DNA of 64,000 nt from Octopus sinensis (lineage: Eukaryota): contig NW_021832231.1 in the NCBI RefSeq assembly GCF_006345805.1, positions 682,001 to 746,000 on the forward strand, read 5' to 3'. The translations under genes and the position numbers were made by a program. The notes beneath the pieces were generated by a model. It was not told the origin of the DNA. It did not search any database and worked only from the letters and a program-made list of their open reading frames with translations. Shown piece by piece: positions 7,701-64,000 of this stretch (its first letter is position 1; each line of letters starts with the position of its first letter).

Positions 7701-8025
7701 CCTGGGCACGCTCCAGGCAGGCCGAGGAGCGAAAGATTCTCAAGTACGGCCACCTGCCCAACTCGCTGCTCTTTACTCCAATTGCCTTGGAGTCCTCCGG
7801 GATCTTCGGTCCCAAGACACTCCGCTTCCTTCGCTCGCTCGGTCGACGGATTTCAAGGACTAGTCACGATCCAAGAGAGTTTTCTTGGCTCCTGGAACGT
7901 CTGTCGATTGCTGTGATCCGAGGGAACGTCTTCGCCATTCGCGCGGCGGCTGGTCGGGTGTCGTGAGGCCTTTAACTAACTTAGCTATCTGTATTTTTGT
8001 CTTGTTTGTATAAATTAAATTTCCA
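4789..8025 (+). mobile_element. CRE-clade RLE non-LTR retrotransposon, copy 2, near full length (PHD-RT-CCHC-RLE), frameshifted
   Basis: PHD at 5043-5180; RT motifs KLDVSNAFNS, GVQQGDPLGP, WYLDD, RWGGLGL; C-terminal CRCG...HPLAC...RHSELN; RLE KRPDG...PIALESSG...LLERLSIAVIRGN; stop at 7964-7966. Possible 14-bp TSD TTTATTAA(T/C)AAATT at 4775-4788 and 8026-8039 with one mismatch. Confidence 0.9.
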
Positions 8026-13881: not shown

Positions 13882-15392
13882 CAGTACCGCTCAAATGTTT
13901 CGGACCACCCTATTTTTCTCAATTTCCAAGTCAATCCTAAATTATTTTTATACGGTTCTTTAGAGAAACTTATTAGATAAGCTTAAATACATTTATTCTA
14001 TTCTAAAATTTCTTTAAATATTTTTGTTTGGCGCCAATTGAATATAATTGATTTTTGACTCGATCATATGTTCCGGACCAGTTGCAATCATATGTTTCGA
14101 ACCAGTTAAATCTCTTTAATTTAAATAATTTTTGATTCAATAAAAACAAAAGACTAATAAATAACAAATGCCGCGTGTTTCACTGGTTGATCGGGTCGCT
14201 ATCATCACTTTTTTTAAAGATGGAGCTTCACAAAGAGAAATTGCCGAAAAATTAAAAATATCCAAAACTGCTGTTCAAAGAACAATTTCCAGATATTCAT
14301 CCGTTGGACTATATTCCGACAGACCCAAATCTGGTCGACCGAGATTGTTATCCCCAAGATCTGAACGCAAATTAGTGAGAATTTCGAAAGCAGACCCCAC
14401 AAAAACGGCAAATCAAATTAAATTTGATATGAAATTAAATTCTATTGTAAGCACAAATACAATTAAAAGATGCCTACAAAGAAATAATTTGAATGGGCGA
14501 AAGCAATGCCCAAAACCAAGTCTTTCCATATGCCATAAAAAGGCTAGAAAAAATTGGTGCATTGAGAAATTAACTTGGAGCCAAAATGATTGGGGTAAAA
14601 TTATTTTTAGTGATGAATGCAAAATAAATTTGCATTCAAACACAAAAAATTATGTTAGAAGGCCACCAAACTCTAGATTTGACTCAAAATATTGTTTAAA
14701 AACACGAAAATTTTCTCCTAGCATTATGGTCTGGGGAGCTATTGCTGCAAATGGATGGAGAAACATTGTCTTATGCATTAAAAATGTTGATTCCGCAGAG
14801 TATCAGAGAATTATAAATGTTGGACTCGAAAATTTTTATGATGAGACCATGTATCTCCAGCAAGACGGCGCTCCTTCCCATCGGTCCATGTCGACAATGA
14901 ATTTTTTCAAAGGTAAAAATCTTAGAAACTTGGCCGAGCCAGTCACCCGAACTGAATATTATTGAAAATATGTGGTCGGTACTAAAACAAAAACTTTATG
15001 ATCTGGAACCAAAAGATCTTCCAGAGCTCTGGAATTTGACCAAAAAAATTTGGTACGAGATTGATAATTCGTACATTGAAAAATTATACAATTCACTTCC
15101 AGAGCGAATAAATGCTGTTATAACGAACAACGGAGGAAATATTAATTATTAACTTTTTATAAGTTTAATAAATTTTCGGTTTTTTTTAAACTGGTCCGGA
15201 ACATATGATCGAGTATAAAATCGATAATTTTAAAATTGCGCCAAACATGAATATCTGTCCAAGTTTTTAAAATAGAATAAATGTGTTTAAGCTTATCTAA
15301 TAAGTTTCTCTAAAGAACCGTATAAAAATAATTTAGGATTGACTTGGAAATTGAGAAAAAATAGGGTGGTCCGAAACATTTGAGCGGTACTG
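13882..15392 (+). mobile_element. Tc1 DNA transposon with ~220-bp IR/DR-type inverted repeats
   Basis: TA TSD at 13880-13881 and 15393-15394; TIR starts CAGTACCGCTCAAATGTTTCGGACCACCC; outer and inner ATGTT(T/C)CGGACCA direct repeats within each IR. Confidence 0.95.
14168..15152 (+). pseudogene. Tc1 DD34E transposase with one frameshift
   Basis: Paired HTH, GRPR, FSDE, VWGAI, QQDGAPSH; then WPSQSPELNIIENMW continues in another frame after about 14930 (consistent with a 5-nt deletion). Confidence 0.9.
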
Positions 15393-17399: not shown

Positions 17400-19600
17400 A
17401 GGAGAATTACGGAAAGTTTAGACTCCTACTTCTAAACTCCGAATGCAATTACTACTGACTTGGGTTTGTTATAGATCGTTGTCTTGATGGGAAAATCGAA
17501 TTAAAAGTCAGCAAAAATCCTACAAACTGGATTCATTCTACATGTTACTAACGAACATTATTTCTGACTTTAGAAGCTAGTGGATGACCTTTGTATGTGG
17601 ATATTGAACTGCAAAAGTTGGCCACTGTACTTGAAGAGAACCCCGTATGGGCAGGCATGCTAGAGGTTAAAGAAATATGTGAGGGTAGTCTCTCGTACAA
17701 TTCTGTAACGCGTTTGGTTACTTCATCTGCAACTCGGCATTTCATCATAATGCGAGACACAAGGCTACATGTACCGGGCTCAGAAAAGATGGAAATTACG
17801 TCCACGTATACAACCAGATATTACTATGTCGCGAGCACAGCGAGCGACCGAGCGCAGCGAGCGACCACTCAATTCTAGATCCGATCAATCAACAAATCTA
17901 TAAATTGACAAATACCCAGGCTGGTATTTGGGTTTAAATATATTCGATAACAAAATTTAAAATCGATGCCAAAGCAGAATGAGCTTTAAACCGATTTCAT
18001 AATAAAATAATATTTTAAAATTTATAATGGATATTTTAGAATAATGAGAAAAAATCTAAATGCTTCATAATTATTAAATGTCAAAAACAAGAATCTTCTG
18101 AAGGAGCAAGCTGTCTGCACAGTTCATTTTGATTAGAAGACCTAATTTTAGAGATTAAAACGAAAAAAGCAATGAGATCTGTTAAATTATTACCCCCCTC
18201 ACAACCTAAACCAAATTAGCGTTCAGTATTCATTGATTTACTTTTTCTATTAAGGTCTACTTATAAATTATTTTATGGATTCAATGGAAAACTTAAGTTA
18301 TTTAAATTTTAATTTTAAATCATGTTAAAATTTTAAATAATTTAATAAATATATTTGTTGATGACAGGCTTGTTAGCTGTCAAAGTCGCGTCTAGCGCTC
18401 GGTCGCGCGCTGCGCTCGCGACATACTACATACTATGCAAAAAACCTTTTTGTGCGCTATTAACAGACTCCCGCCGATATGATGGCAAGATCACCTACAG
18501 TTATTATAAACTGCTTGTTTCAAAATTCAGGATAGAAAGATATTTTGGAATAGATGGGGCTCGAAAGAAAAGAGCCAACCTGGACAGTTTTGGAAAAATT
18601 ATGCCTATGTGACAAGAAAAGTGAAAATTACTGTATGGAAATTAATAAGAAAATTATGAACATAATTATGGAAAATCCCTCTGCAGTGATTTGGGATGCT
18701 ACAGTTGAGGGAATAAAGAAAGCAAGTACCAATTTGCCTGGGAAAAAGGCTGGCTAGATTCAAAGGAGTGTTTGATCGCCGGATTGAACCATTATCAATT
18801 AAACAAAAAAATTACGAATCAAAATGAGATTGTGCACAAATCCTGATACTTATAACAAGTTAAGAAAAGAAAAAAATCGTGTTGTCAAAAAGATTACAAG
18901 AAAAAGGAATGAAATCTATTTCAAGAAAATTGACGAACGTGGGGTGACATCGAGAGACTGGGACACGGAACACAATTCACGACAGCCTAGGGAAAAATGT
19001 TTTGGACAATAAAGAAAACCGGACATTTTTTAAGAATCACCAGAAAGTCTGAATCTACTTAAAATCAACCATTTAAACAACAACAAGGCAGTTGGACCAG
19101 AAACTTAATGGTGGAATTTTAATTCCTTTGCATAAACCAGGAAAGAGCAAGGAACCGCTAAAAAATGTAAGACAAGTGATATTACTGCGAACATTGAGAA
19201 AAATACAATCTCTGATTATTCTCAGTCAGATATCTTCTGATGTTTATGATTTCTTGTCATCGGGATAGAGTGGATTCACGAGGGGTCGCTCGACCGCACT
19301 TGCCGTCTTTTCATACAAATGAATATGTTCCGTGTGTCAACGATACTAGAGTGATTTCAAAATACTGAGAATGGGCATGCTCAGTGCTTTTGATACTTTT
19401 AACAGGGAAAATTTTTGGATGCAATTGAGATCTTTTTCGATAAAGATAATACGAGGCTGATTTGTTTTCTATTGTCTAATACTGAATTAACTGTACGGGT
19501 TAGGAATATGACATCGATGCCTTTTGCAAAAACACCTGGGACTCTTATCTCCGGTTTTATTTATCATATACCTGGAGGCCTCTCTGAGAGCTCTCAGAAC
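17400..19600 (+). mobile_element. RTE-like LINE remnant (APE endonuclease end to RT start), interrupted by a MITE
   Basis: NQI-YILCKKPFCALLTDSRRYDG (end of APE domain, rejoined across the MITE); later LNNNKAVGP, MLSAFDTF and LLSNTELTVRV RT-like motifs, with many stops. Confidence 0.65.
17827..18423. mobile_element. 597-bp MITE with TGT...ACA ends and 5-bp TSD (Ginger-type termini)
   Basis: Imperfect IR of ~28 bp, TGTCGCGAGC(A/G)CAGCG(A/C)GCGACCGAGCGC; TSD TACTA at 17822-17826 and 18424-18428. Confidence 0.85.
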
Positions 19601-20524: not shown

Positions 20525-21900
20525 TAAGTCATATGGACAAGTTATCGATTGAAGAAGGGAGTAAAACATACATTCAGTCGATTTTGCCAAAGATGACGTT
20601 CTAGAGCAGGGGTGCGCCGCATGCGGCCGAGAGTCGATGAATGTGCGGCCGTGGGCACAATTAGGTCATCGAGCAACTAATCTTAAATATAATGCTCATA
20701 GTGTTAATTAATCAAGAAAAACCCTAAATAATAATTAAAAATATTCATATTAAATAAAATTCTATTTTTATATAATGGTTAACCTCATTGCCGAACAAAC
20801 GCTGGAACACGATCTGAAACACGTGGGTAAAACCTTGAAAAAATGCGAGGACTTGGACGAACTGCGATGGCTTGCACAAAACCGCAGAGGATGGAAAACG
20901 ATGGTTAAGAAGATTGTATCGTGTGTGGCACGTGTGGGAATATAACTCTTTCCTTTCCTTGTTTATGTTCCTACGGGAAGTGCTAATAATAATGATAACC
21001 TCATTGATCTCATTGATGCCAAAATAATTAATTATGACGATCTTACACCAAATACATTTAATACTATATTCGATTATATTTTGAAACAATTTGAAGAGCG
21101 ATTTAACGAATTTAAAAAAATTGAACTCAAACTTCAATTAACTGCAGCACCACATACTGTTTCGATTGAGAATGCGCCATTGGAATTTCAAATTGAATTA
21201 TTGAAATTAAAAAATGATTTAATTTTGATAAATAAATTTAATGAAAGCGAAGATTTGTTGAATGTATGGAAATCAGCGACAGATTATTCAAATTTACGTG
21301 AAATGGCAAGAAATATTCTCGTTTTATTCGGAAGCACATATTTATGTGAGTCTACATTTTCCAAAATGAAATATTTAAAAAGTCAATATAGATCTCGGAT
21401 AACGGACGCAAACTTAGAGTCATGTTTGCGCATAATGATATCTACCCTACCAGTGGATTTCAATAAGCTCGCAAAAAATACCAAAGATCCTGGCCGTCAT
21501 TAGAATAACTTGTATAATACATTTCTTTTAATTAATTTTCCTTCTTTCTTATCTTTTTTGCATGAAATAAGTATTTATTTTAATAATATGACGTCCCTGA
21601 TGAACGAGAGCATTTCCTGTCCAAGAACTTATTCGGTCTCGATGACAATGGGGAACTTATGCGGTCACTTTTAATAATTAAAAAAATTACTATATTAATA
21701 TCGAAAAAATAATGCAGAAAATGTGCGGCCGTGGAAGAAAAGGAAAAAAATGCTATGCGGCCGCAAACCCAAAAAGCTTGCGCACCCCTGTTCTAGAGTA
21801 TGATCATTGAACACCGACACGAAGTGAAGGTAGACAACGCCTCTGCCAATAAACTTGCGGAGCTGGCATTCCGCGAGGACACTCAGTTGAACAAAAAAAT
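20525..21900 (+). mobile_element. R4-like RLE retrotransposon 3' fragment (paralogous to 2315-2500), split by a hAT element
   Basis: 20525-20606 and 21791-21900 align to 2315-2500 (CATATGGACAAGTTATC...; GAGCTGGCAT..CGCGAGGACACTCAGTTGAACAA). Confidence 0.8.
20607..21790 (+). mobile_element. Non-autonomous hAT (Buster/SPIN, GTF2IRD2-like) element
   Basis: 11-bp TIR CAGGGGTGCGC; 8-bp TSD TTCTAGAG at 20599-20606 and 21791-21798. ORF 21081..21503 has the hAT dimerisation motif LFGSTYLCESTFSKMKYLKSQYRSR. Confidence 0.93.
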
Positions 21901-24362: not shown

Positions 24363-25828
24363 CAGTGGGGCAAATAAGTCATGGCACACCTATCATTTTT
24401 TTAATTCAATATATTTTTACAATGATAACTTTTTCGATTTAGTTCATCATGCTACACAATAAAATCTTGCATTCTTTTGAACCCATTTCGTGCTAATTAT
24501 ATTCATGAATTTCAAATAAATATAATTGTTTTTGCTTCATATTTAGAAAAACGTCAAATTTGATGTGTAAAAAAGTGATGACACTATCAAAAAATATGGA
24601 TTTTTTTGACAATAAGATACAAATGATTATCTTTTGGTGCCTTGTTAAGTTATGGAGAGATTTCTAAATTGTTGATATTACCAAAAAGTACTGTTCGAAA
24701 TATTATTACTCGATGGAAGCAACGCGGAACTGTTATTAATAAACCAAGATCGGGTGCTCCAAAAAAGATATCTCTGCGTTCTTCTTCATTAATGAAAAGA
24801 TTAGTTACTTCAAACCCAAAAATAACTCGAAAAGAATTGGCCGATAATTTAAAAATCACAGGAACGTCAGTGTCCCTTCGTACAATCACTTCTATACTAC
24901 GCAAAGAAGGTATCAATAAGCGAAGGCCCCGTCGAGTTCCGTTATTACAGAAAATACACCTTTCAGCGCGAATCCAATATGCAAAAAATCTTTTGAACAA
25001 AGAAAATGAATTCATAAACAATATTTTGTGGTCGGACGAATCAAAAATACAACTTTTCGGACTGAACTATACGCTTTCAATTTGGCGCAAATCAAATCAG
25101 GCGTATATCCCAAAATGCACCATACCTACCGTAAAGCATGGGGGAGGTAGTATCATGTTGTGGGGTTGTTTTTCATCAACAGGTGTTGGTGAACTATTTG
25201 TAATTGATGGAATGATGAATTCTCTTAAATATTGCGAAATTTTGGAAAAATGTCTTTTACCTTCGGTCACGAACTTAAATTTGACACAACATTGGACATT
25301 CCAGCATGACAACGATCCTAAGCACAAGTCAAAAGTAACCGTTAAATGGTTAGAAAAAAACAAAATAAATGTTTTGGAATGGCCAAGTCAATCGCCAGAC
25401 CTGAATCCCATCAAAAACTTATGGAAAATATTAAAAATAAAAGTTGGCTTAAGAAAACCAACAAATATCCAGGAATTAAAAACAATTTGCTACGAAGAAT
25501 GGAAAAATATTTCTAAAGTAGAATGTCAAAAACTAATTTTTTCTTACAAAAAACGATTGGAAGCAGTTCTGCTAGCAAAAGGGAATCCAAATAAATATTA
25601 ATTGGATTTCGTGCCATTACTTTTTTCCCTCAAAAAATTGACTTTTAAAAATAAATCGTTAATTAGTGCACTATTAATAATTCCCTTTAAGATAGTTTTT
25701 TTAATAATTTATCTAAAAAGTTCTATATTACTAATTTATTTTTTAAAGTAATGTATTTAATCATTTTTTGCAAAGAATTGTTAAATTTAGTCAAAATTTG
25801 CAAAGGTGCCATGACTTTTGCCTTACTG
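24363..25828 (+). mobile_element. Tc1 DNA transposon
   Basis: TA TSD at 24361-24362 and 25829-25830; imperfect TIRs CAGTGGGGCAAATAAGTCATGGCAC and CAGTAAGGCAAAAGTCATGGCAC. Confidence 0.92.
24642..25601 (+). CDS. Tc1 transposase, open frame but third catalytic E changed to K and no ATG at the start
   Basis: WSDESK, TVKHGGGSIMLWGCF, FQHDNDPKH, WPSQSPDLNPIKNLW; AAA at 25413-25415 in place of GAA. Confidence 0.88.
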   Translation: MLSYGEISKLLILPKSTVRNIITRWKQRGTVINKPRSGAPKKISLRSSSLMKRLVTSNPKITRKELADNLKITGTSVSLRTITSILRKEGINKRRPRRVPLLQKIHLSARIQYAKNLLNKENEFINNILWSDESKIQLFGLNYTLSIWRKSNQAYIPKCTIPTVKHGGGSIMLWGCFSSTGVGELFVIDGMMNSLKYCEILEKCLLPSVTNLNLTQHWTFQHDNDPKHKSKVTVKWLEKNKINVLEWPSQSPDLNPIKNLWKILKIKVGLRKPTNIQELKTICYEEWKNISKVECQKLIFSYKKRLEAVLLAKGNPNKY

Positions 25829-34667: not shown

Positions 34668-35047
34668 TTACACAAAAATTAAAATTATAAAAATTCAGAT
34701 ATTTGTTAATTAACATAAATGATAATAGTAAATCATTTTTTGGGATTATAAGGAACATCGAGTACTCCCACGGATATCATAAAGGGACGGATATCGAGGA
34801 ATACTTTTAACACTCATTAGTCGTAAGAGATTAGGGATCCCTTTGGCTGAACCAGTCTCAAACCAGTATCAATAAATCACATATTTTTCTAAATATAGTA
34901 TGTAGGACATTTAGGATCGAAATTAATAAATTTAATTTTTTGTTATCTGCTATTTTATTTTTAGGGAATCTCTAATTAGAAACAAATAAAAAATTTTTGA
35001 ACTATTAACATTATTAACATTATTTTGGAGTTATATAATCTATTTCA

Positions 35048-37947
35048 ATGCAATATCCATTTTTTGACACTAAAAAACGAGAGGAGAACAGTGGAAGGAA
35101 TACTCCAGGCCCAAAGGATGTAAGAGACATTAAACAAAGCTTTAATCGTCATTTGCACAACTCTCGCCTCAAGGACCGCAATATTGCTACCAAACGTGAT
35201 TATTACATCTCTTTGGCTCACACGGTGTGCGACAAAATGGCTTCCCGGTGGATCAGAACGAGCCAATACCACCACAGACTAGACTCCAAGGTTTTCCTTG
35301 ATTTTATTTTCCCAGAGAATTTATTATTTGTCCATTGAATTCTACGTCGGTCGTCTTTTGATAAATTCCATGATCAACGTTGGAATAGACGGGCATTGCG
35401 AAGAAGCCGTTTATCAAGTATGTCCAACATGTTCTTATTTAACAAGCTGGGACTAGATTTGGAAGAATTAGAAAACATGGAGCCTGAAATTGGTTTAGGA
35501 AATGGTGGACTGGGAAGACTGGCTGCCTGTTATCTTGACTCGATGGCTACTTTGGGCATTGCAGGCATGGGTTATGGACTGCGCTATGAGTATGGCGTAT
35601 TTACTCAAGTAATTTACGATACCGACCATGTCTAAATTTTATTTAAATTAATTAAGAGAGAGGAGCTTGACAATTGGTTGAAGTATAGCAATCCCTGGGA
35701 GAGGTGCATCCAGGAATATATTGTTCCTGTCAATTTTTACGGGAAAACAATCAGAGTGGATGGACAAACACAGTGGATTGACACTGAAGTGACCTTTCTT
35801 TAATAAGTAGGTTGTGTATGCAATTCCCTACGACACACCTGTCCCCGGATATGGGAATAACCACGTCATAACTATGCGTTTGTGGGCTGCCAAACCCTCA
35901 GCCGTATTATTTCTGGATTGCTGTAAGTTATTAGTTTTCGTCACTGTCTAGTCCACTCAGGAAATTACGGCAAAGCTATGAGAGACCCATACCTTGCTGA
36001 AAGCATAACACGTGTTCTCTACCCAAATGACGAGGTATTCATGCCCTTTATTTCAAGAGATTTGAAGGTAAGGAACTCCGTCTCAAACAAGAGTACTTCC
36101 TGGCCTCAGCGACTCTCCAGGATATTATTCGGCGGTACAAGGACTCGAAAGAACCTAGGACTTCATTCGACCAGTTTCCAGAAAAGGCAATTGGTCATTA
36201 TAAATTAGTAGGTGGCCATTCAAATGAACGATACGAGTCCATCCTTGGCTGTTCCTGAATTGATGAGACTGTTGGTGGACGTCGAAGGTCTGGATTGGTC
36301 TTATTCTTGGGATATCTGCATAAGAACTTTCGGATATACCAACCACACTCTCCTTCCCGAGGCACTCGAGCGATGGCCACTAAAAATGTTGACTAAATTG
36401 TTGCCCAGAATAATGCAGATAATCCATAAAATAAATCGCAAGCATTTACAGGTTGAATGTGCAGTGATTTTGCAAGGCGGTCTCTGAGTTTTGGCCCAAT
36501 GACGAGGATGTCTTGGAGAGAATGAGTCTGATTGAAGAGGATCGTAATAAACGTGTCAACATGGCCTATCTTTGCATTGTGGGGTCACATTCCGTCAACG
36601 GAGTCGCCGAACTTCACTCAAAATTAGTAAAAACTGACGTGTATATATATTTTGTATAAATCACAAGATTTCCTGATTTTTATAAAATGACTCCTGCCAA
36701 GTTTCAAAACAAAACCAACGGAATCACTCCCAGGAGATGGCTAGTCTACTGCAATCCATCTTTGACAGATTTTATTCGCCGTGTACGTTTAAAGTATTAC
36801 TTTTAGCAAATTGGGGACGGATTCGTAACAGATTTGCGTGAGTTGAACAAACTGAGGCCACTTGTGTCAAATCAACAAATTATTGACGAGATTTGTTTGA
36901 TAAAACAGGTTCAGTGTCCTCAGTATGTCATAGAGTAATAAAAATAAATTCGCTTTGTATGTTAAAAAGTTGTTTGGATTCTTGATTGACCCCTCGACCA
37001 TGTTTGATGTGCATATCAAACCAATTCAAGAAAGTAAACGACACCTTCTGACCTGCCTTCATATAATAACGCTCTACAACCGCCTCAAACGGGTCAAGGC
37101 TGGTTTGGATGACTACACTGTCGTCCCCAGGACTGTCATAATTGGGGGGAAGGCTCCTCCCGGCTACAGAATTGCAAAACTCATCATCAAATTGATATGC
37201 AATGTGGCTGATGTGGTGAACAGTGATCCGGAGACCAATAAAGACCTGAGGGTGTTTGTCCTTCCGGATTATAAAATGTCGTTTGCAGAGAAAATGGTCC
37301 CTGCAGCTGATTTGAGTGAACAACTCTCACTCGCAGGAACTGAAGCGTCTGGAACTGGAAACATGAAATTTATGGTTGGTCAGTTGATTTATTGCCAGTT
37401 GAACGGGGCTGTCACTCTGGGGACGTTTGATGGGCCCAATGTAGAAATGGTTGAACAGGTTGGGATGGAAAATATATTTATATTCGGAATGACAAACCAC
37501 GAAGTTAAGGAAAATTACTCTTCTGGGTATTTTATAAGTAAAGAAGTGTAGATACAATCCTCGTTTTTATTATCCAAGGAGTCCTCAATTAATAGAATGT
37601 ATTGAACAAATAAGAGACGGATTTTTCAGCAGGGAGGAGCCTAATTTATTATGCGAAATATGTCAGACTATGCTCTCTGATGATCCTTTCATGGTCATGA
37701 GTGACTATGATGATTATATTCAGAAGCAGCTTTTGGTAGAGGCTGCTTACTTGGTATGTTGTGTGCCGTATTTTGATAGAATTCTAATGTGTGGAATACA
37801 ATGTGCTTGAACAACATCATTGCTGCTGGGTTCTTCTCTAGTGACCGTGCTGTGGCTCAGTATGCTTCCGATATTTGGAACGTTCCCTTGTCCAGGGATA
37901 TACTGCCTGTCTTAGATGAATCTCAAGAATTCTCTGGTTTGAATTAG
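35048..37947 (+). CDS. PYG: Glycogen phosphorylase, multi-exon, with divergent active-site motifs
   Basis: [93 protein letters not shown] (PLP Lys), GFFSSDR. Confidence 0.95.
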
Positions 37948-38681: not shown

Positions 38682-40029
38682 CAGCGGTTCTCAACCGTGG
38701 TCCCCAGAAATTTTCGAAAAATAAAAATATATTAAAGTTAAAACTAATTGTACAATTAAGTATAAATCAAAAACATTGAAATTAATCAAGCGGTTCTCAA
38801 TCGTGGTCCCCAGAAAATTTTTAGTGGTCCCCAGGAATTTTCGAAAAATAACAATATATTAAATTTAAAACTAATTGTACAATTAAGTATAAATCAAAAC
38901 ATTGAAATTAATCTGATTTGATTAGCGTGGTTTATCATTCTAGTTATGGTTAACAAGAATCGTCGTCTTTGGTCGGATTCTTACGTACAATTTGGATTCA
39001 TTAAATTCATTGCCCCAAATAATGAAATAAAGGCAAAATGCATGATTTGCCACAAAATTTTGGGAAACAATTCACTGAAACCTTTTCAACTTAGGCGCCA
39101 CAAAGAGTCTGTACACCCAGAAATCCGATTTTTTCTGTAGCCGATTTTTTTAACATTTTAAATGAGTTTAATTTGTCAATGCAGGGTAAAATTTTTATTA
39201 ATTTATTTAAAGGTCTTTATATATCAATTGTCGAGGTCAATCAAATAATAATGCTTTTAAAAAAGTTATTATTGTGGATAATGAAAAAAAAAAGGAATAA
39301 CATCAATGTTCCCAATGCTTGAATATCATCTCGGACACAACCCACCGGATAATGTTCTTCTAAGTCTGATAATCAAACATCTGGAAAATCTCAAGACAAA
39401 ATTTGATGATTATTTTCCTGTTGAGACCCAATTCCAAACTGGATCGTTCAACCTTTCTTGACCTCATTTAAAGAATATCAGGAACTCAATTTTCAGCAGA
39501 GCTTGATTGAACTTCAATGTAATCAGTCTGCTCAGATTATTTTCAAATGTACTTCATTATTAGATTTTTGGTATTCTCATTAATAATTACTTTTTATTGT
39601 TAGGTGTCAGATGGCGAAAGAATTCCCCATTTTGAGTAAAACTGCATTGGAATCAATACTTGCATTCCCCACTACTTATCACTGTGAAATGGCGATGTCG
39701 TGTCTGACTTTTCTAAAAACAAAATATAGAAATAGACTACGGGTACAAGATGATATGCGAGTAGCTTTGTCGAACATAGAGCCTGATATAAGTAAAATTA
39801 TTCTGAGCAAACAAGATCAGAAATCTCACTAAATTACTATTAAATTTTCTGTTATTTTCATAATGTTCATGTTATTTTTATAATAAATATTCGAACATGT
39901 CTAAACCTGGCCCTGACGAGGCCAAAAATTGTGCGCTAATACCAAAAAATGTTTATTTTATTTAAGGTGGTCCCCACAAAATTTTATAGTGCAAAAGTGG
40001 TCCCCAGTCTAAAAAAATGAGAACCGCTG
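38682..40029 (+). mobile_element. Internally deleted hAT Buster/Charlie (ZBED8-like) element with duplicated left end
   Basis: 12-bp TIR CAGCGGTTCTCA; 8-bp TSD TATTAGTA at 38674-38681 and 40030-40037. BED ORF 38946..39140 and dimerisation ORF 39611..39832 (FPTTYHCE). Confidence 0.92.
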
Positions 40030-49519: not shown

Positions 49520-50598
49520 TTGAAGGTTTTAATGGACCTCATCATGAATGTCGAGGACATTCGCGTTGTTCATTTTAATCAAAATGCAGAAAATATTTTT
49601 TTGATTTTTTGGGGGGGAGGTTTTAAGGACTTCATCATGTAAGTCGAGGACATTGTAGTTGTTCATTTTAACCAAAATGCAGAAAATTTTTTTTAATTTT
49701 TTTGGGGGGGAAGGTTTTAAGGACTTCATCATGTAAGTTGAGGACATTGTAGTTGTTCATTTTAACCAAAATGCAGAAATTTTTTTTTAATTTTTTTGGG
49801 GGGGAAGGTTTTAAGGACTTCATCATGTAAGTCGAGGACATTGTAGTTGTTCATTTTACCAAAATGCAGAAATTTTTTTTTAATTTTTTTGGGGGGGAAG
49901 GTTTTAAGGACTTCATCAGTAAGTCGAGGACATTGTAGTTGTTCATTTTAACCAAAATGCAGAAATTTTTTTTTAATTTTTTTTTTGGGGGGGAGGTTTT
50001 AAGGACTTCATCATGTAAGTCGAGGACATTGTATTGTTCATTTTAACCAAAATGCAAAAAAATTTTTTTTTAATTTTTTTTGGGGGGAAGGTTTTAAGGA
50101 CTTCATCATGTAAGTCGAGGACATTGTAGTTGTTCATTTTAACCAAAATGCAGAAAATTTTTTTTTAATTTTTTTGGGGGGAAGGTTTTAAGGACCTCAT
50201 CATGTAAGTCGAGGACATTGTATTGTTCATTTTAACCAAAATGCAGAAAATTTTTTTTTAATTTTTTTTGGGGGGGAAGGTTTTAAGGACTTCATCATGT
50301 AAGTCGAGACATTGTAGTTGTTCATTTTAACCAAAATGCAGAAAATTTTTTTTTAATTTTTTTTTTGGGGGGAAGGTTTTAAGGACCTCATCATGTAAGT
50401 CGAGGACATTGTAGTTGTTCATTTTAACCAAAATGCAGAAAATTTTTTTTTAATTTTTTTGGGGGGAAGGTTTTAAGGACTTCATCATGTAAGTCGAGGA
50501 CATGTAGTTGTTCATTTTAACCAAAATGCAGAAAATTTTTTTTTAATTTTTTTGGGGGGAAGGTTTTAAGGACCTCATCATGTAAGTCGAGGACATCG
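49520..50598. repeat. Tandem satellite, ~93-bp unit, about 11-12 copies, inside the Helitron
   Basis: Unit AAGTCGAGGACATTGTAGTTGTTCATTTTAACCAAAATGCAGAAAAT(n)AAT(n)G(n)AAGGTTTTAAGGACTTCATCATGT, varying mainly in homopolymer length. Confidence 0.95.
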
Positions 50599-50622
50599 TA
50601 TTGCCAATTTGAAGTTGGTGTG

Positions 50623-50687
50623 CACACACAGACAAGACAGACAGACAACCAGACACACAGACAGACAGACACACAGACAGACAGACA
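50623..50687. repeat. Imperfect (GACA)n microsatellite near the Helitron 5' end
   Basis: CACACACAGACAAGACAGACAGACAACCAGACACACAGACAGACAGAC... Confidence 0.9.
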
Positions 50688-53366: not shown

Positions 53367-55632
53367 CAGCGCCAAGCACCCGCCTCGCTGGCGATGTCCC
53401 TGCCTTTTGTGCCCGGACCCCTGAGGAGGTCTCGATCGCCTCTTCATCTGTCCAACAACTTTTGTTTGCTTTGAAATCTTTCAGGGGGAACAGTAGTGGT
53501 GGTGTTGACGGTCTCCGTCCCATTCACTTAATGGACCTCATCTCCAATACTGCTGAGGCTGGAAACCGTCTTTCTCATCCATTGCCAAGCTTTGTAACCT
53601 ATTTCTCCGTGGGGACATATCCGAGCATGCCAGACTGCTCTTCTTCTCTGCGAACCTGTCTGCTTTGGGGAGAAAGACGGCGGCATCAGACCTATTGCCG
53701 TCGGAACGTTTTTCGTCGCTGTTTGCAAAGGTCGGATGCAGCTTGTAATTCCTTCTATTAGCGACCGAACTCCAGCCCATTCAGTTGGGTGTGGGGGTAC
53801 CTGGTGGGTGCGAGCCTCGTCCACGCTGCCCGGTGTTTCATTGAATCGGCTCGTCTCTCAGAGCGGCCCCAGTTATTATTAAAATTGGATGTGAAGAACG
53901 CTTTCAATTCGCTCAATAGAAAGCATCTTCTTGAGGTTTGCAAGGCCAGAATTCCTTCTCTGCTGCCCTTCATTTTTCTTTCTTATGGTAACCCGAGCCT
54001 CTTGGTTGCTGGCGATTCTTTCATTTCGTCTTCCTGTGGCGTACAGCAAGGCGATCCTTTGGGTCCTTTATTATTTGCCCCTCGGTGGACTTTGTCGCCC
54101 GCAGGATTGCGTCCCCTCTTAATATTTGGTATCTGGACGACTGTACTATTGGTGGTCCGCCCGACATTTTGCTAAACGACTTGCAATCTCTACTCCCGGC
54201 GTTGTCATCTATTGGTCTTGAAATCAATTCTCTAAAATCTGAAATCGTTAATCTTAACGTCGAAGACCTCACCTTCGAAGACTTTTTGCTTAGTTTCGTG
54301 GCCTCTTGCCCGATCTGAGGCAGACCTCTTATTCTGAACTTGAAATCCTGGGTGCCCCGATCCACCACCAATCGGTCTCTCGTATTCTCGATTCCAAGAG
54401 AAATGCTCTTGCTTCTCTTTGTGATAACTTGTGGACATCGATCCCCATCCCGCTTTTTTATCCTCAAAACTTTCTTTTGATTCCGAGGATCAATTATGTC
54501 CTAAGGAGTTCCTGTTGCTTTTCTGTTCCCTCTGCTTTGGAGTCTTTTGACGCTCTGGTGCGTTCTTCAGCCGAGATTATTTTTAACGTCAAGTTCGATG
54601 ATGTCGGTGGCGTCAGGCCAAACTTCCTGTTCCTTTTGGTGGGCTTGGGCTCCGCTCGGCTCTCGACATTTCTCTTCCCGCTTTCCTTTCATCGTCTTCA
54701 GGATTGTATCTTCTTGTCCATAAGATTCTTGAAAAATCGCCCGGATCTCGTTTGGACTCTGATATTAATTCTGCACTTTTTCTTTGGAAGGAAAAAGGGC
54801 TTGAGTTCCCTTCTGATAGGTCCCTCCAACGTGAATGGGATAAAATTCTAGTAAGCATCATGCGGACTCGTTGGAGGCTCTCCTGAACCAGCACGACTGG
54901 CTGTTTCACCGTGCCAGCCGCCAACCGCATTCTGCTCTTGGCTTAACTGCCTTCCTTCGACGCATTTGGACACCTGTCTTGACTCCGACGCCCTCCGTTT
55001 TGGCATTTGCCTCCCCTCGGACTTCCGATCTGTAGTCCCCACCCCTGCCGGCGGATCTACTATGGACGTATACGGGCTCCATGCCCTCTCCTGCAAGAAA
55101 AGCGCGGGTCGTATTCCACGCCATTCGGCGATTAACAGAATCATTCTCGACTCCCTCGAAAAGCCGGCTACCCTTCTGTCCTTGAGCCTAAGGGTCTCGA
55201 CCGTTGTGACGGGAAAAGGCCGGACGGCTCTACGTTGTTCTCGTTTTATTCTGGGAGACCTTTGGTCTGGGATTCCACTTGTGTGGATACCTTCTCAAAG
55301 TCTTTCATCAACGAATCGGCCTCTCTTGCTGGGTCTCGTGCTAATAAGGCTGAGCTTTCGAAGTGCCGGAAATATCAGTCTTTGATGGATGACTTTTGGT
55401 TTTGGCCAATCGTTGTCGAGACTTCCGGCGTCTTTGGCTCCGGGACCCTCACTTCCCTAAAGAAATTGGGACATCTTTGTTCTTCGCGGTCCAAGGACCC
55501 TAGGGAATTTACTTTCCTCATTCAGAGGATCCTGCTGGCTGTCATGCGTGGCAACAGCTGTTCCCTCCGTCTCGCTGGGAGAATTTATTAGTTTGTTGAC
55601 TTTACTTAGTAGTTTGACCCTAACAATAAAAC
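53367..55632 (+). mobile_element. CRE-clade retrotransposon, copy 3 (distinct subfamily), 5'-truncated with TSD
   Basis: Perfect 15-bp TSD ACAAGAAAATAAATT at 53352-53366 and 55633-55647. Motifs SSGGVDGLRP, KLDVKNAFNS, GVQQGDPLGP, WYLDD, HALSCKKSAGRIPRH, LVWDSTCVD, PIVVETSG, QRILLAVMRGN; frameshifted. Confidence 0.92.
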
Positions 55633-57560: not shown

Positions 57561-57753
57561 GGGTAGTAAATATTTATAAATAATATTTACAATTATGTTC
57601 TGTGGTCACATATTGTAAATTAAAAAATCATATTTGTATAACAAAGACTTATAAACCAGAAAAAATGTAAAAAATGCATCTTTATGTGTATTTTTGTTTA
57701 AAAAACTTAGTGATACTATTTGATAAAATATACCATTAATTCTCATTATTAAT

Positions 57754-58426
57754 TGTGACCGGTTCATAATGAGATACGGTTGAATACGAGCCTTAAAAGA
57801 TCGATAATTAATATACCGATTCAAAAGGCCAATTACAATAAAGGCAAACTTCCGAACTAATGATTGAACTTTAATTTTTGAAAAAATGATGTTTTATATT
57901 TGAACCATGTTTGCTTAAAATAGTAAAATTATTTACAACATTAGCAAATTATAATGTGAATTATTTTATTTTTGATATTATAAATTGCAACATTAGCAAA
58001 TTAAAAGTTTGTAACAACTTTAACTCTAATCTTAACTTAACTCTAACTCTAACTATAAATGATTTCAACGTTATTTATAAACATATTCATCATAAAAAAG
58101 ACACTAAAGAAAACAGACCCTAACCCTAATCCCTGACCCTGACGCTAACCCTGACGCTAACCCTGACGCTAACCCTGACCCTAACCCTGACCCTAACCCT
58201 GACCCTAACCCTGACCCTAACCCTGACCCTAACCCTGACCCTAACCCTGACCCTAACCCTGACCCTAACCCTGACCCTAACCCTGACGCTAACCCTGACC
58301 CTAACCCTGACCCTAATTCTAATATGATTTAACGGCATTCACGCCATTTAACGGCTCGTATAACGCCACTTTGACGGCTCGTTTAACGGCTCATATTCAA
58401 CCTGGGCTCGTATTCAACCGGTCACA
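57754..58426. mobile_element. 673-bp MITE with TGT...ACA ends, 5-bp TSD and internal telomere-like array
   Basis: Termini TGTGACCGGTT...AACCGGTCACA; TSD TTAAT at 57749-57753 and 58427-58431. Subterminal GGTTGAATA(C/T)GAGCC motif occurs once on the left and twice inverted on the right. Confidence 0.82.
58118..58316. repeat. Telomere-like array: 15 strict 12-mers CCCTGA-C(C/G)CTAA (58137-58316)
   Basis: 11 x CCCTGACCCTAA and 4 x CCCTGACGCTAA, preceded by CCCTAA x2, T and CCCTGA. Confidence 0.97.
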
Positions 58427-58510
58427 TTAATTAATATTTTAATTTTTTATACAGTATTCAAATAAAATAATCCGAGAAATAAAATAATTAATTCGTTTAA
58501 ATAAGTTATA

Positions 58511-61500
58511 ATGCCTAATTGGCAGTGCTCCGCTGAAGATTTAGCCAAATGGGAATCCACTTTCCTCCGTCTCAATTCAAATAACGGGCTTGTTTCAGGT
58601 AATCTTCAACCAATAACTACAAAATAAACAGGAAGAGTACTGGCCCCCATCTTTTCCCGTTCCAATCTGAATGAAATGGTCCTAGCCAAAATATGGTCCT
58701 TCTAATTAGTAAATTCCCTCAGGGACTTGGTGGACGAATCAAAGTGCGGAAGCCTTAACCAAAAGCAGTTTTTTTATGCCATGAAAATAATAACAAACAC
58801 CATTTCTGGGGAGAAGGTCCCTGAAAAGTTACCCGTCCAGCTCACTTATTCGCTTAATTCTCGAAATCCTTCTAAAAAGACCGAACTTAACCTCACCAAT
58901 CAACTTGAGGCTTTTTCTCTCACCGCCCCCTCCGTGAAACCAGAACCCGCCCCGCCCAAACAGCCCCCTCAGTGGCCCACAGCCTCACCCGATCCATTCC
59001 CAGAGGCCAGTCAGTCCCCTCAATGGGATCTCATTTCTCAGCCGAAATCAGTTTTTTTATTAAATAAACACAGGCTAATAAACCTGAACAATCTCAGTCT
59101 CCACTTTTGACTCAACAAAGTCTAGGAGATGCGGTAAAGTTGTGGTTTTACCTTTCAGTCCTCTCCGTGGGGTCCGCTCAGTTCAGAACAAACTGTAAGA
59201 CTTTTTTTTACTTATTTTTCAGACAGGGCCGTTCAACATTGAGCAAAATGTATAGATTCCATGTCTAATAAGCAGTTGCCTCAGTGGGGTTCAACAAAAC
59301 AACAACCACTGTCGGTTAGTTTTTATAATTAATGATTAGCCCTTCCAATGGGACCAATTGACTCAACCACAATCTGTATAATCTGTTTATACGAACATTG
59401 TTAGCGGCCTCAGTTGACTCACTGGGACCAGATGGGGCAACCACAACCAGCCCAGCCCATTTCAACTGCCTTTAAGGATACCAATTTGCCTCAGTGGAAT
59501 CAAAGGGGACAAGAAAAGACTGTAAAAATATGATTTAGGTATTATTCGTAGGAGTCCCATTCGCCTCAATGGGAACAATTTAACCAACCACAAACAGTAA
59601 TTATATTAGTAATTAATCATATTAACAGATTAGTAATCCCCCTTGGGAACAAAATGTACATTTTATATATTCAGACTCAGGATCCCTGGTCCCAGACGGC
59701 AACTCCCACTCTGCCCAACACTGATGCCTGGAACGTGGTCTCGACAACTCAAACTAGTCAAAATCCCTCATTTTTTCCTAATCCCATTTCTAATCAAATT
59801 CCTCCACAGTCAAACGACGATTTTGAACTGAGAAATTCAGAATATGAAGATTATTCTAAAGAATTCCTAAGGTTGACCAACAGTGGGGGATCTCCTCTTA
59901 ATTGTACTGTTTGGACTAGTCAATGTTTAGTAATACAACTTAACCAGTCATTGGGTCTGTCCAAAAATGTCATTTCTTCAATTTGGTATTTTAATTTCCT
60001 TATTTTGTGTCAGTTCACTAATGGGGATCCGGGAAGAGGAGTCTTTGAGTTTGGAGGAGTTTGTGGTGGCGAGGCTGTTGGCAGAGAGGGCTAGACGGGG
60101 ACAGAGTTTGCTGACAAAACTCCCAAACGTCCTACGGGCACTTCTTTCTCAGAAAACCAGCTTGGGGGATCCTGGATCAGGGAGGGTAGAGCAGTTAAAG
60201 AAGGAAATTGAACAAGTTTTGAAAGCCATAAATGCAGCCCGGCAACAATCTGAGCAAATTATTTCTCAGAAGTTTGAAATTGAGAGGGAACTTGTCATTC
60301 TTTCTAACGAGGAGAAGGTTTGTGGTAATTTTGATTGGCCAAGCGTGTCTGGGAAGAGCTGGCCAGTCAGGGATCAGTGGGGACCGACGAGGCAGAGCTA
60401 CAGCAAATATCTGATCGGATAATTTCAATTCAGAGGACTTTAAAACAGCCTCATTTCAAACGTTTTGGAAACGCAGGAAATTTCAAAATAGGGTCGGAAT
60501 GTTCTCAAAAAATGTATTTTTAATTTATATTTTTAGTCAACAAATTCCATTTGACCATTCGAGTACACTGGAAGCAGACCGGACTGTTCAGGGGGATGTT
60601 GTGTGGGGGGATATTAACTGGCTCTCTGGCACAGAATATGACGAGCCTCTAGTTTGGCCAGTCGAGCAACCCGTTGTGGAGTCTACTGCACCACAACAAC
60701 CCAGTTCTGAGGAGAGTGAGATCATGGTGGAAGCCAAAAAATCGTTCAAAGGGACAAAGCCTAATCATTTGTCCTTCTCTACTGGAAAAACGTTTCAATT
60801 AGTGGACAAAAGCAGTGAAGACTCCCCTTGGTGGGTTGGGAGGATAGATCAGCAAATCGGATGGTTTCCCAAATCCTTTGTGTCGGAGGTTCCTCAGATT
60901 TCCTTCGAATCTAAGTTTCCTCCTAATTCAGGTCAGAGGGATGCACATTTGCAGTGTTCTGTATGGCCGAATACAATTTTGTGGGGGAGGAAGACGGTGA
61001 CTTGGGTTTTCATGTGGGGGATGTAGTTCGGATTGTTTCAAAGTTGGACGATGATTGGAGTGAGGGAGAATTGGCTGGAAATATTGGCATATACCCAAAC
61101 AACTACGTCTGTGAAATGCCGGTATGGACGGTGTGGTTGACTCGCAGGTCGAAATGACAAACCAGTCGTACACAGTGACCAGTGCTCATTCCAGTAATTG
61201 TGCAAGTCACCTCAAGTTGAATTATGGTGACCGTGTTATCGCCCTTGCCCGTTCCAAGTCGTTCTGCTGGGGACATAAAGTCTCGGATTCTAATTGTGGA
61301 TGGTTTCCAGTCAGTTGTCTGAATTGTATTAACTAAATTATTACAATAATAAATTAGTAATTTCATATTTTGATTGATTAATACATTAATTATTTTCCTT
61401 CGCTTTAAAAGCTTACTAAATGTCGATTAGGTTTCTCGGTTGTCGAAAACTTTGTAAAGGGAGAAGAGCACCTCTTGACGGTTTTGAAGGAGATTGACGA

Positions 61501-62977
61501 GGTTTTTTGCTTGTTCCTTTCACAATAAGAAACTTGGGAGACTTTGCGAGCACGTGAATGATAGCGAATTAGGCATACTTTTATCAAATATGGACGACCT
61601 TTATAACCTTCATTCTTCGTTTGTGACGTATAGGGGATTAATTCACGTTTCGATAGTGAAATGCGTAATAGACTGTTCTTGGGGTCCTCCGATATTGGGG
61701 ACATTCTCCTTGACATTGTACAACCAGTTTATTGACATCCAGTTTCCTAGATTTTGCATATACAAAAAATACGTGATCGACTCAGCTGCCTGTTCCCGAC
61801 TGCTTAATTCGAGTTTGTTGGACAAAACTTTCTGTCAGCATCTCAAAGTGATTTTTTCCTTAATTTTAGAAAGCTACTAAAATGGATGTCAAACAATTTG
61901 AAATTCTCCTGCTTAAGCCAATCCAGAGATTGTGTCGGTATCCTCTGTGCATTGATGAGGTTGTGGTGTCCCTATACTTTGAGATTGTCAAAATTCTTGG
62001 CAATACTACCAGCTTTACAGAGGCAAGGACGACTATTAATTCGATAAATGTCAAAGTTAACCAAGTTCTTAGCAATTCAAACAATACTTTTAAACTTGAT
62101 TGGCTCGGAAAACGAATCACAGTGCCCAGCCACGTCAAAAGAGAGGAATTTAAAATTACGTCGTTGACTAATTTCATGGGCCCTCGTGTGCTCGTTCACT
62201 ACTCAGTCTTTAAATATAAGCATAACAAAATGATGGCATTTCTCCTTTTTAATGACATGGTCATTCTTGCTACTTTTGCAGGAAAGGCTTCTGACATGTT
62301 TAATGTCAACCATGAGGGACTCCTCACTTTGAAAGTTCCGGTTTTCCACTGTTTCTAATGTTTATTTAAAGGCAGTTCTTCTGCCAAAATTCCGATGTTA
62401 TATTCACAATTTGAATGACTTATTTATCGCTGATTTGTCAGGAAAACAAATTATGCTTCAACCTGTCAATCCTGATGAAGGGTCCTTTCCTTGTGTCTAA
62501 TTTTAGTGTCATATGTGTAGAGAAATACTCTCAAGCATTATCTAACTATATTTCTTTCAGTACCCCACATTGTTCAGTCTCCTCCAATTTAGTCTTAATC
62601 ATTTCACTAAATATAATTCAATTTGTAACTATGCCAGTTTCCAAGGAAGATGGAATGTATCACTGCTCTCTCACTGTTAATGGACTCACTCGTAATGCCA
62701 TTCATGGCTCGTTGGTGGACAAGATTATTGTGTGGGCTGATAGTCCGTTTGAGTTTGTAATTCAGGCAGAAGAGTGTCCCGAAATAGAATTAGTTCTTTC
62801 TCACCCTCGTTCATTTCGTCCAAACCGTTTTAAATGTCCAAATATTTTATAGGCGCCATTGCTCATACCAAAATTAAATGGGACTTGCCACAAAAAGGCT
62901 ACATCCACGATTTTTTAACATTTGAGGGGCATCAAGTTTTTGTAGACTTGGATTTGTCGTTTGGAGAGGTCATTTAA
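58511..62977 (+). CDS. ITSN: Intersectin-like endocytic scaffold, long form (EH-EH-coiled coil-SH3s-DH-PH-C2), multi-exon
   Basis: EH1 LAKIW/DLVD...LNQKQFFYAMKII; EH2 near 59830-60080; coiled coil; SH3s (AKKSF...WWVGRIDQQIGWFPKSFV; YNFVGEEDGDLGF...WSEGE...GIYPNNYV; LARSK...GWFP); DH LLLKPIQRLCRYPL; PH MMAFLLFNDMVIL; C2-like C-terminus. Confidence 0.88.
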
Positions 62978-64000
62978 AGGAAATTATTAACTAATGCAAC
63001 TTTGTATTTAAATAAATTATAATTCTGTGTCAATTTTTGTTTATTTGAAAAATAGTTGTCAATCATTAAATTATTGACCATGGCTAATTACTTTGTCAGG
63101 GCAATAACTCTGTGAATAGAATGGTCATCACATTTAGGAACAGTCTTTTGTCTAGTCTTCACGATCTAACAATACTTGGCTATGATTGAGTTGATCCAAG
63201 TCGCAATACTTTAAGTCGATCGCAATACTTTATCCAAGTAGAGTGTTCCTATCACTTGTTAGCATCCCCATCCAGGACTGCACGTCTATTTATGTTCCTG
63301 ATAACGTCGTGCTTGAATACACTGATTGGGGGAAAGACATAATTTAAAGCCGAAAGCAAGTTTCTCGACAAGCTAGCGGTTTTTAAAGAAAGAGGCCAAG
63401 AACTAGACATATACAATAAGTTTTACTCTGCATCATTTTAAAAACATTGTGGTATGGGACGTGATTATTTTGACGTGGATTATTATTTTGTGGCGAATTA
63501 TTACTAATATTGTTCTCAACTAAGATAAAATTAGTGTCCCGAAAATTGTTTTAATTAGAATAAATTTGTAAGATCGATTGTTTATTAAATAGTTTTTTAT
63601 TGCTATATTAACAATAGATAAGTTTTGTCGTTACTTAGGTTTGCCCTAATTGTTGTTGAAATAAATCTTTTACTTTCAATAATAGACAACGAACACAAGA
63701 AATCTTTATTTTATGTCATAATAGATATAGTTATGTGCATGCTTAATAGTTGCGAGTTTCATTTTCTAATTTTCAGTTTTTTTATTCAATTGATAATGAT
63801 GAAGGAGATTCAAAATTAGACTACAAATCAATTACTCTGTACTATTGAACTAAATTGAAAATTTTTCCGTGTTATAATCCCTGTCCAAGTAGAGTGTATT
63901 CCTAGTTATTATTCAGCAATTACTTGTGCACAGAATTGAAGCGATGACTTAATTTTCTGATTTGGCTTACTTGAATTTGCCGGATTTATGTCAAAATTTT

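Follow-up and report, generated by a model that had tools for sequence, protein, structure and literature searches.

Short non-coding transposons may enclose tandem arrays, and MITEs (miniature inverted-repeat transposable elements) with internal tandem repeats and a microsatellite have been described in molluscs (PMC3879986). Interstitial telomeric repeats, in turn, can be flanked by one repetitive element (PMC9693754) and can grow by slippage (PMC6410037). The routes by which such tracts emerge include insertion of telomeric repeats during break repair, microsatellite birth followed by slippage, and carriage by mobile elements (PMC6410037, PMC9693754). As for the transposons themselves, Ginger termini read TGTNR, TDD-4/5 produce a 5-bp duplication and the targets are AT-rich (PMC2836005); in Ginger2 the duplication is 4 or 5 bp long (PMC10045372). 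Here we analyse a 673-bp element with inverted ends and an internal telomere-variant array, located just upstream of an intersectin-like gene in a stretch of 64,000 nucleotides filed under Octopus sinensis (assembly GCF_006345805.1, contig NW_021832231.1, positions 682,001 to 746,000 of the forward strand). This whole stretch is hereafter called the window. The element is probably a repeat-bearing non-autonomous transposon that belongs to an integrase-type group, its passenger being a 12-bp minisatellite derived from telomere repeats, and the window itself very probably consists of DNA of a dicyemid, a parasite of the octopus kidney.

Ends and interior of the element

The element is delimited by a perfect 11-bp terminus, TGTGACCGGTT, which has two exact occurrences in the 64-kb window, at 57754-57764 on the plus strand and at 58416-58426 on the minus strand. 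A second inverted block of 16 bp, CGGTTGAATACGAGCC, lies at 57777-57792 and is perfectly paired with 58405-58420. Over 39 nt, a gapless comparison of the two ends gives agreement in two segments, 1-11 and about 25-39. Matched bases of the terminal inverted repeats number 27 in the first 39 nt, and the likeness fades past ~39 nt. Both termini are directly abutted by the pentamer TTAAT, a target-site duplication (TSD); by our estimate, a 5-nt match of the flanks would be expected by chance in the local AT-rich DNA with a probability of ~0.005. Internally, two GGTTGAATAYGAGCC units stand in tandem at the right end, and at the left end a 13-nt aberrant stretch replaces the first unit. Motifs of the GGCTCGT/GGCTCAT type number four at the right end (58347-58420) and one at the left. 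Open reading frames (ORFs) across the element are all of low complexity (35-72 aa), and none of them encodes a transposase. Inverted termini, an abutting TSD and small size without a transposase are among the features by which MITEs are defined, and the element displays these three.

Within the aberrant stretch, the nine bases ATAATGAGA (57765-57773) match the flank TCTCATTAT at 57741-57749 as its inverted complement. The two segments make up a 9-bp perfect stem, TCTCATTAT/ATAATGAGA, within 57741-57774, with the left terminus in its loop. Judged from the letters, this stem looks like a templated repair scar.

The telomere-variant array

Eleven of the 15 dodecamers of the array are exact copies of TTAGGGTCAGGG (minus strand). 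The other four are TTAGCGTCAGGG, in which a hexamer reads TTAGCG, and start at 58137, 58149, 58161 and 58281. A scan with the dodecamer pattern returned 17 matches against 0.14 expected, and Tandem Repeats Finder (TRF) reported a period of 12, 16.7 copies and 94% matches. If 15 + 15 hexamers were ordered at random, strict alternation would have a probability of about 1e-8. Counted from the right end of the element, whose tips are TGTGACCGGTT, the array begins 110 bp inward. An earlier sequence-only reading of this stretch had described a 673-bp element with these termini, a TTAAT TSD and subterminal repeats, enclosing 15 uninterrupted alternating 12-mers, four of them with a C>G change. All of these features are indeed present, with the 12-mers at 58137-58316 (11 exact and 4 with TTAGCG).

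The regular pattern ends at the borders of the array: one edge is non-alternating (Table 1) and the opposite one reads TTAGAA-TTAGGG. Of the four TTAGCG units, three lie side by side and have the G>C change in common. A decayed (TTAGAG)n tract, located 57 bp away, has the same orientation as the array. Because of these non-alternating edges, of the adjacent units with one mutation and of the nearby decayed tract, the array is best viewed as having turned over in place, and it looks like a telomere-derived minisatellite homogenised there in units of 12 bp. Its purity fits recent expansion, but also selection. The array and its edge together supply six of the seven canonical G-quadruplex motifs of the 64-kb window (non-overlapping, on the G strand) and contain 12 RGGTCA half-sites, mostly spaced 12 bp. 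Tandem-repeat and pattern scans found no comparable array at any other gene of the window.

The following course of events would account for this organization. Upstream of the intersectin-like gene, at a distance of 84 nt, a non-autonomous cut-and-paste (MITE-like) element would have entered AT-rich intergenic DNA. An old TTAGGG-type tract inside the element may have gained a TCAGGG variant unit, and the resulting 12-bp dimer would have been amplified and homogenised in place via replication slippage or unequal exchange.

Transposon class and copy number

The ends of the element, TGTGA...TCACA, conform to the 5'-TGTNR...YNACA-3' pattern of Ginger2/TDD transposons. The 4-5-bp AT-rich duplication of that group is also seen: it is TTAAT at this element, TACTA at a second, sister-type element of the window, and TAATA next to a copy of the latter's terminus on a related contig. 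The sister-type element, which has TGT...ACA ends (Table 1), was recovered when the window was scanned blindly for inverted 10-mers with direct repeats on either side, and no telomere-like repeats are present in it (17827-18423). Its terminus recurs at 97.6% on L001 (10233-10273), beside a different AT-rich pentamer. L001 is one of three related loci (L001-L003, 53 kb, or 117 kb together with the window) which were reached via phosphorylase fragments annotated as 'Octopus sinensis'; only transposon fragments and duplicated phosphorylase pieces are common to these loci and the window. Because the terminus of the sister-type element recurs on L001 with another flank, TGT...ACA elements with 5-bp duplications are mobile in this lineage. 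The 673-bp element fits that class, and its own family is presumably mobile too. Its end logic points to the integrase-type (Ginger2/TDD-like) group, membership of that superfamily being putative.

Other superfamilies were considered and rejected. piggyBac would require TTAA and asymmetric ends, and Transib would require 5'-CAC termini. For hAT, Mutator, Merlin and P, duplications of 7-10 bp are required, and Tc1/mariner, as far as the 673-bp element is concerned, requires a TA target.

No empty site was found on L001-L003. A 16-mer search of prokaryotic genomes produced only chance-level matches in unrelated bacteria. The exact products of two transposon ORFs of the window and of an ORF derived from the array are not on record, and Rfam and tRNA scans of the window gave no matches.

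Telomere-like arrays at other loci

Another interstitial array, (TTAGGG-TTTGGG-TGAAGG)x6, is present on L002 (1800-2010). It is built of an 18-nt unit and has degenerate TTAGGG-like edges. A search of its surroundings found no inverted repeats; 100 bp downstream there is a T(40) run. Since L002 carries a higher-order array different from that of the window, such telomere-like arrays seem to arise repeatedly from a TTAGGG core. Both arrays share TTAGGG as their core, which makes this hexamer the likelier candidate for the canonical telomere unit of the lineage.

When the 24-mer (TTAGGGTCAGGG)2 was used as a query, at least 120 unrelated GC-rich marine metagenome contigs (L004-L123) were retrieved, in which the match is always internal and belongs to mixed arrays containing as many as 7 strict dimers. 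Given that these marine contigs carry internal mixed arrays of this kind, mixtures and alternations of TTAGGG and TCAGGG arise independently elsewhere. In the marine contigs (GC about 60-70%; e.g. L095:1062-1145, L006, L012), TTAGGG is mixed with TCAGGG, CTAGGG, CCAGGG or TGAGGG, and in some of them 16-22 nt of unique sequence ahead of the array is repeated behind it. As (GGTTAG)n supplies GT...AG, the marine arrays might be telomere-repeat insertions acting as introns in some protist. A transposon common to the marine arrays was considered and rejected, because the large flank cluster turned out to consist of continuing telomere-like hexamers.

Host genome

The window has introns of 19-35 bp and a GC content of 37.0%, and is rich in transposons. 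Among animals, introns <30 bp are known only from myxobolid myxozoans and Dicyema (PMC13644364), and the genome of Dicyema japonicum has a GC content of 36.7%, 48.9% repeats and a mean intron length of 38 bp (PMC6736024). Three short proteins annotated as Octopus sinensis (P0001-P0003) share 93% identity with a phosphorylase ORF of the window. All other animal and bacterial phosphorylases reach only ~58%, and no other cephalopod is among the matches. The window was assigned, with high confidence, to a dicyemid because of these short introns, the GC content, the diverged proteins and the confinement of near relatives to contigs labelled Octopus sinensis. Contigs VCDQ01004456.1, VCDQ01002408.1 and VCDQ01013216.1 of GCA_006345805.1 (L001-L003) would, with equally high confidence, be dicyemid contamination. 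The octopus assembly GCA_006345805.1, along with RefSeq proteins such as P0001-P0003, appears to hold parasite contamination on a megabase scale (VCDQ01004456.1, 959 kb; VCDQ01002408.1, 1.03 Mb).

The identity of the host matters because somatic chromatin elimination has been reported for dicyemids: PMC6543705 cites Noto 2003 and Awata 2006 for chromatin elimination and extrachromosomal circles in their somatic cells. The sequence-only reading had made a role in chromosome breakage or healing relevant on condition that the species undergoes programmed DNA elimination. Through the dicyemid host, the condition probably applies; the role itself is weighed below.

Neighbouring gene and other features of the window

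The start codon of the neighbouring gene (58511-58513) is found 84 nt past the element end, with an in-frame TAA 9 nt upstream of it, so the 84-bp spacing to an intersectin ATG given in the sequence-only reading is correct; the domain series EH-SH3-RhoGEF-PH supports the gene identity as well. The array lies on the template strand side, and 195 nt separate it from the ATG. Pfam searches with the spliced model detected EH (5e-15), two SH3 (2e-19), RhoGEF (5e-12) and PH (6e-06) domains, and did not detect a C2 domain. The EH match over residues 9-92 is obtained only after removal of the first two introns, of 33 and 27 bp. Because EH, two SH3, RhoGEF and PH domains emerge after removal of 19-35-bp introns, naming the predicted product 'intersectin-like' is justified. 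With the aim of reaching an orthologous promoter as an empty-site test, the 602-aa spliced model was compared with 5.8 billion proteins; no ortholog was found, and the search returned one distant EH protein with 30% identity. The coordinates of the features are collected in Table 1.

Table 1. Features of the 673-bp element, the adjacent gene and the second TGT...ACA element (positions in the window)
Feature	Positions	Strand	Description
Element	57754-58426		673 bp, non-coding, termini TGTGACCGGTT
Left TSD copy TTAAT	57749-57753		Same as 58427-58431
Left terminal inverted repeat	57754-57792	+	TGTGACCGGTT, then 13-nt aberrant stretch CATAATGAGATAC, then GGTTGAATACGAGCC
AT-rich interior	57793-58015		27-nt direct repeat 57928-57954 / 57980-58006; no coding capacity
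Decayed telomere-like tract	58016-58058	-	~7 TTAGAG/TTAAG-type units; TRF period 6, 7.3 copies
Array edge	58116-58136	-	G strand ...TCAGGG TCAGGG A TTAGGG TTAGGG, non-alternating
Main array	58137-58316	- (G-rich strand)	15 uninterrupted TTAGGG-TCAGGG 12-mers, 180 bp
Right subterminal repeats and right terminal inverted repeat	58347-58426	-	GGCTCGT/GGCTCAT x4, including two tandem GGTTGAATAYGAGCC; end ...AACCGGTCACA
Right TSD copy TTAAT	58427-58431		Abuts right terminus
Intersectin-like gene	58511-63111	+	EH, P/Q-rich, coiled-coil, 2 SH3, RhoGEF, PH; 3' end of the model uncertain
Second element	17827-18423		Ends TGTCGCGAGC...GCTCGCGACA (TGT...ACA), ~35-bp GC-rich inverted repeats; TSD TACTA 17822-17826 / 18424-18428

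Several further repeats were noted in the window. A 93-94-bp satellite at 49522-50600 (11.4 copies, 94% identity) consists of units with A/T and G runs and is followed by an (ACAG)16 microsatellite at 50624-50687. An uninterrupted 319-aa ORF of a Tc1-type transposase is located at 24642-25601, and two more Tc1/mariner-like elements with inverted ends at 13888-15386 and 38683-40028. A concatenated query of the window transposon proteins matched only fish and frog Tc1 (Sleeping Beauty-like) sequences, at ~50% identity, and none closer. Three copies of a non-LTR retrotransposon (LTR, long terminal repeat) lie at 639-2600, 4968-7966 and 53462-55591. Each contains a reverse transcriptase, with a cysteine-rich (PHD-like) motif at the N-terminal end and similarity to restriction-like endonuclease elements in the C-terminal region; diverged relatives (66-77%) are present on L001 and L002. 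A hAT-like element at 20607-21790 has an 8-bp duplication TTCTAGAG, ends CAGGGGTGCG and a remnant ORF. Pieces of a glycogen phosphorylase gene occur in the window (34721-37630), on L001 (10479-11954) and on L003 (10001-10575). They are 95-97% identical, rearranged and partly inverted, and either arose by segmental duplication or are parts of the gene that a transposon carried along. The L001 piece directly adjoins a TGTCGCGAGC-type terminus.

Alternative explanations

A number of observations weigh against a non-autonomous transposon of the integrase-type group with the array as passenger. The inverted repeats span 27-39 nt, compared to 50-180 bp in metazoan Ginger2, and the left terminus includes the aberrant 13-nt stretch. 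An autonomous Ginger2/TDD partner would be expected to encode an integrase-like DDE transposase with an H2C2 zinc finger, and Pfam scans of selected long ORFs from the window and L001-L003 (117 kb) detected no integrase-type domain; the domains found there were reverse transcriptases, Tc1-type DDE and an endonuclease. The 22-nt terminus had 0 matches in metagenome and viral collections. No second copy of the 673-bp element was found in the window or in the 53 kb of related contigs. Of the array-dispersing MITE family envisaged in the sequence-only reading, the MITE structure (ends, TSD, no transposase) holds, and the dispersal of arrays is hypothetical. A further point is the unusual purity of the array and its strict periodicity, with six of the seven G-quadruplex motifs of the window placed beside a gene start. 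An origin of the tract in break repair, by telomerase addition or telomere copying at a double-strand break inside the transposon (e.g. upon failed excision) with subsequent mutation and expansion, is a variant of the preferred explanation, compatible with it rather than exclusive, and appears conceivable though unlikely. It would make the tract a short interstitial telomeric sequence within a single repeat element. Canonical TTAGGG-TTAGGG is present at one array edge, the left end is repair-scar-like (ATAATGAGA is the inverted complement of the adjoining flank), and short interstitial telomeric repeats are known from repaired breaks, among them a class flanked on both sides by one repeat (PMC9693754, PMC6410037). 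However, no junction signature was identified at the array borders, two like-oriented tracts 57 bp apart better fit one old tract than a recent single addition, and in a single copy such an event would look like microsatellite birth. It is improbable that the element represents a remnant of a terminal-repeat retrotransposon or a solo LTR, a possible source of a promoter for the gene. Such an identity would agree with the TG...CA ends, with the 5-bp duplication (3-6 bp for LTR elements; PMC10045372) and with the length of 673 bp, which is within the LTR range, but not with 27 matched inverted-repeat bases in 39 nt and reiterated subterminal motifs, which are typical of transposase binding sites. 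The sister-type element has inverted repeats of ~35 bp, and no gag/pol or integrase ORF was found nearby. It is very improbable that TTAGGGTCAGGG is the true telomere repeat of the species, specified by a 12-nt telomerase template, and that the element captured a piece of telomere, even though 11 of the 15 dodecamers are exact, the period is strict and no telomere sequence of dicyemids is reported in the literature searched. The array is internal, enclosed by the element ends and surrounded by unique sequence and a gene; its edges do not alternate, and a mutation common to three adjacent units indicates duplication in place. Moreover, the 18-nt higher-order array of L002 has only TTAGGG in common with it, and alternating arrays are internal in unrelated organisms too. 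The proposal of the sequence-only reading that the 12-mer reflects the telomerase template is thus disfavoured, given the internal position, the irregular edges, the adjacent mutated units and the L002 array. Least credible of all would be an assembly or base-calling artefact. Nanopore base calling tends to miscall telomeric repeats in systematic ways, but the documented errors are TTAAAA, CTTCTT and CCCTGG, and a strict CCCTAA/CCCTGA alternation is not among them (PMC9414165). Matched inverted ends with a matched duplication around the array are beyond what a chimeric join would make.

Of the possible functions, co-option of the array as a cis-regulator of the intersectin-like gene, either as a G-quadruplex block on the template strand or as an array of GGGTCA nuclear-receptor half-sites, is doubtful and would in our estimate have only a small chance of being true. 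The distance of 195 nt to the ATG, the six canonical G-quadruplex motifs and the 12 RGGTCA half-sites speak for it, and TCAGGG repeats bind NR2C/F nuclear receptors in human cells that use alternative lengthening of telomeres (ALT; PMC6410037). Against it, other genes of the window have no such array and four of the units lack a GGG run. By analogy with ciliates, the element might alternatively serve as a site of programmed somatic breakage, healing or excision during dicyemid chromatin elimination, with circles as products or with a new telomere seeded by the array. The reports of chromatin elimination and somatic circles in dicyemids (as cited in PMC6543705) would accommodate such a role, as would the orientation of the array: its G strand points away from the gene, and if the chromosome broke on the left side of the array, the fragment with the gene would keep a correctly oriented cap. 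A precedent in which transposons, telomere repeats and elimination are connected exists in the ciliate telomere-bearing transposons (PMC4724952). Nevertheless, a breakage role is exceedingly improbable: a single array is present in 64 kb with at least six genes, the repeats are internal, unlike the terminal repeats of the ciliate elements, and the second TGT...ACA element is devoid of telomere-like repeats. No greater is the chance that TGT...ACA elements in general might be programmed units of excision or breakage and the array a site of de novo telomere addition, as an animal counterpart of the ciliate telomere-bearing transposons. The functional and elimination roles are putative and individually improbable, and the telomere-protein tether suggested in the sequence-only reading is likewise hypothetical. 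The array is most likely a passenger, presumably a neutral one, rather than a telomerase product of a chromosome end, and a dedicated telomere or promoter function is without evidence.

Comparison with known systems

If a transposon with a telomere-derived passenger array is the correct explanation, the locus would be a small example of transposons that carry tandem repeats and serve as nurseries for them, and of interstitial telomere-like tracts evolving a higher-order periodicity. The host adds to its value, as the repeats, telomeres and elimination sequences of dicyemids are essentially uncharacterised, and the analysis flags megabase-scale dicyemid contigs in a public octopus assembly. The 22-nt terminus, the dodecamer and the second element type with the same ends are probes which, with existing dicyemid and octopus reads, bear on the dicyemid telomere repeat, on an active integrase-type family and on the treatment of such elements in soma versus germline.

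Among telomere-bearing transposons, the TBE of Oxytricha are likewise DNA transposons with telomere-type repeats, in hosts that eliminate germline DNA, but they are autonomous Tc1/mariner elements with ANT targets and their repeats form the tips, whereas the tips here read TGTGACC (PMC4724952). Because TBE repeats form the element tips, the ciliate parallel is a functional analogy only. Tel-1 of Tetrahymena, the element of Cherry and Blackburn from 1985, is reportedly grouped with the telomere-bearing elements.

With respect to the hexamers, the TCAGGG variants of human proximal and ALT telomeres are the same hexamer, with GGGTCA half-sites interspersed with TTAGGG; they are irregular and belong to true telomeres, while the array described here is interstitial and strictly alternating and comes from a very distant animal (PMC6410037). 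Short interstitial telomeric sequences flanked by one repeat, as summarised from Azzalin 2001 in PMC9693754, also have internal telomere-type hexamers inside a repeat element, and break repair or microsatellite birth with slippage could explain both. Compared to typical short tracts, the present array is longer (180-200 bp) and more ordered, with TCAGGG making up half of its hexamers and a strict 12-bp period.

Ginger2/TDD transposons resemble the element in their TGTNR termini (TGTGA here), the 4-5-bp duplication and the AT-rich target (PMC2836005, PMC10045372). They differ in that the inverted repeats are shorter here, that the duplications of metazoan Ginger2 are 4 bp long and that an integrase-type transposase was not found here. 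Finally, the mollusc MITEs with tandem repeats, DTC84 of Donax trunculus and the oyster 'pearl'-type elements, are similarly short non-coding cassettes with inverted ends around a tandem array, include a microsatellite-like segment, change copy number of the repeats in place and reside in spiralian hosts. In contrast to the array analysed here, their core repeats are ~160 bp long and non-telomeric, their duplication is putatively AA, and they are present in high copy as opposed to the one copy seen at this locus (PMC3879986).

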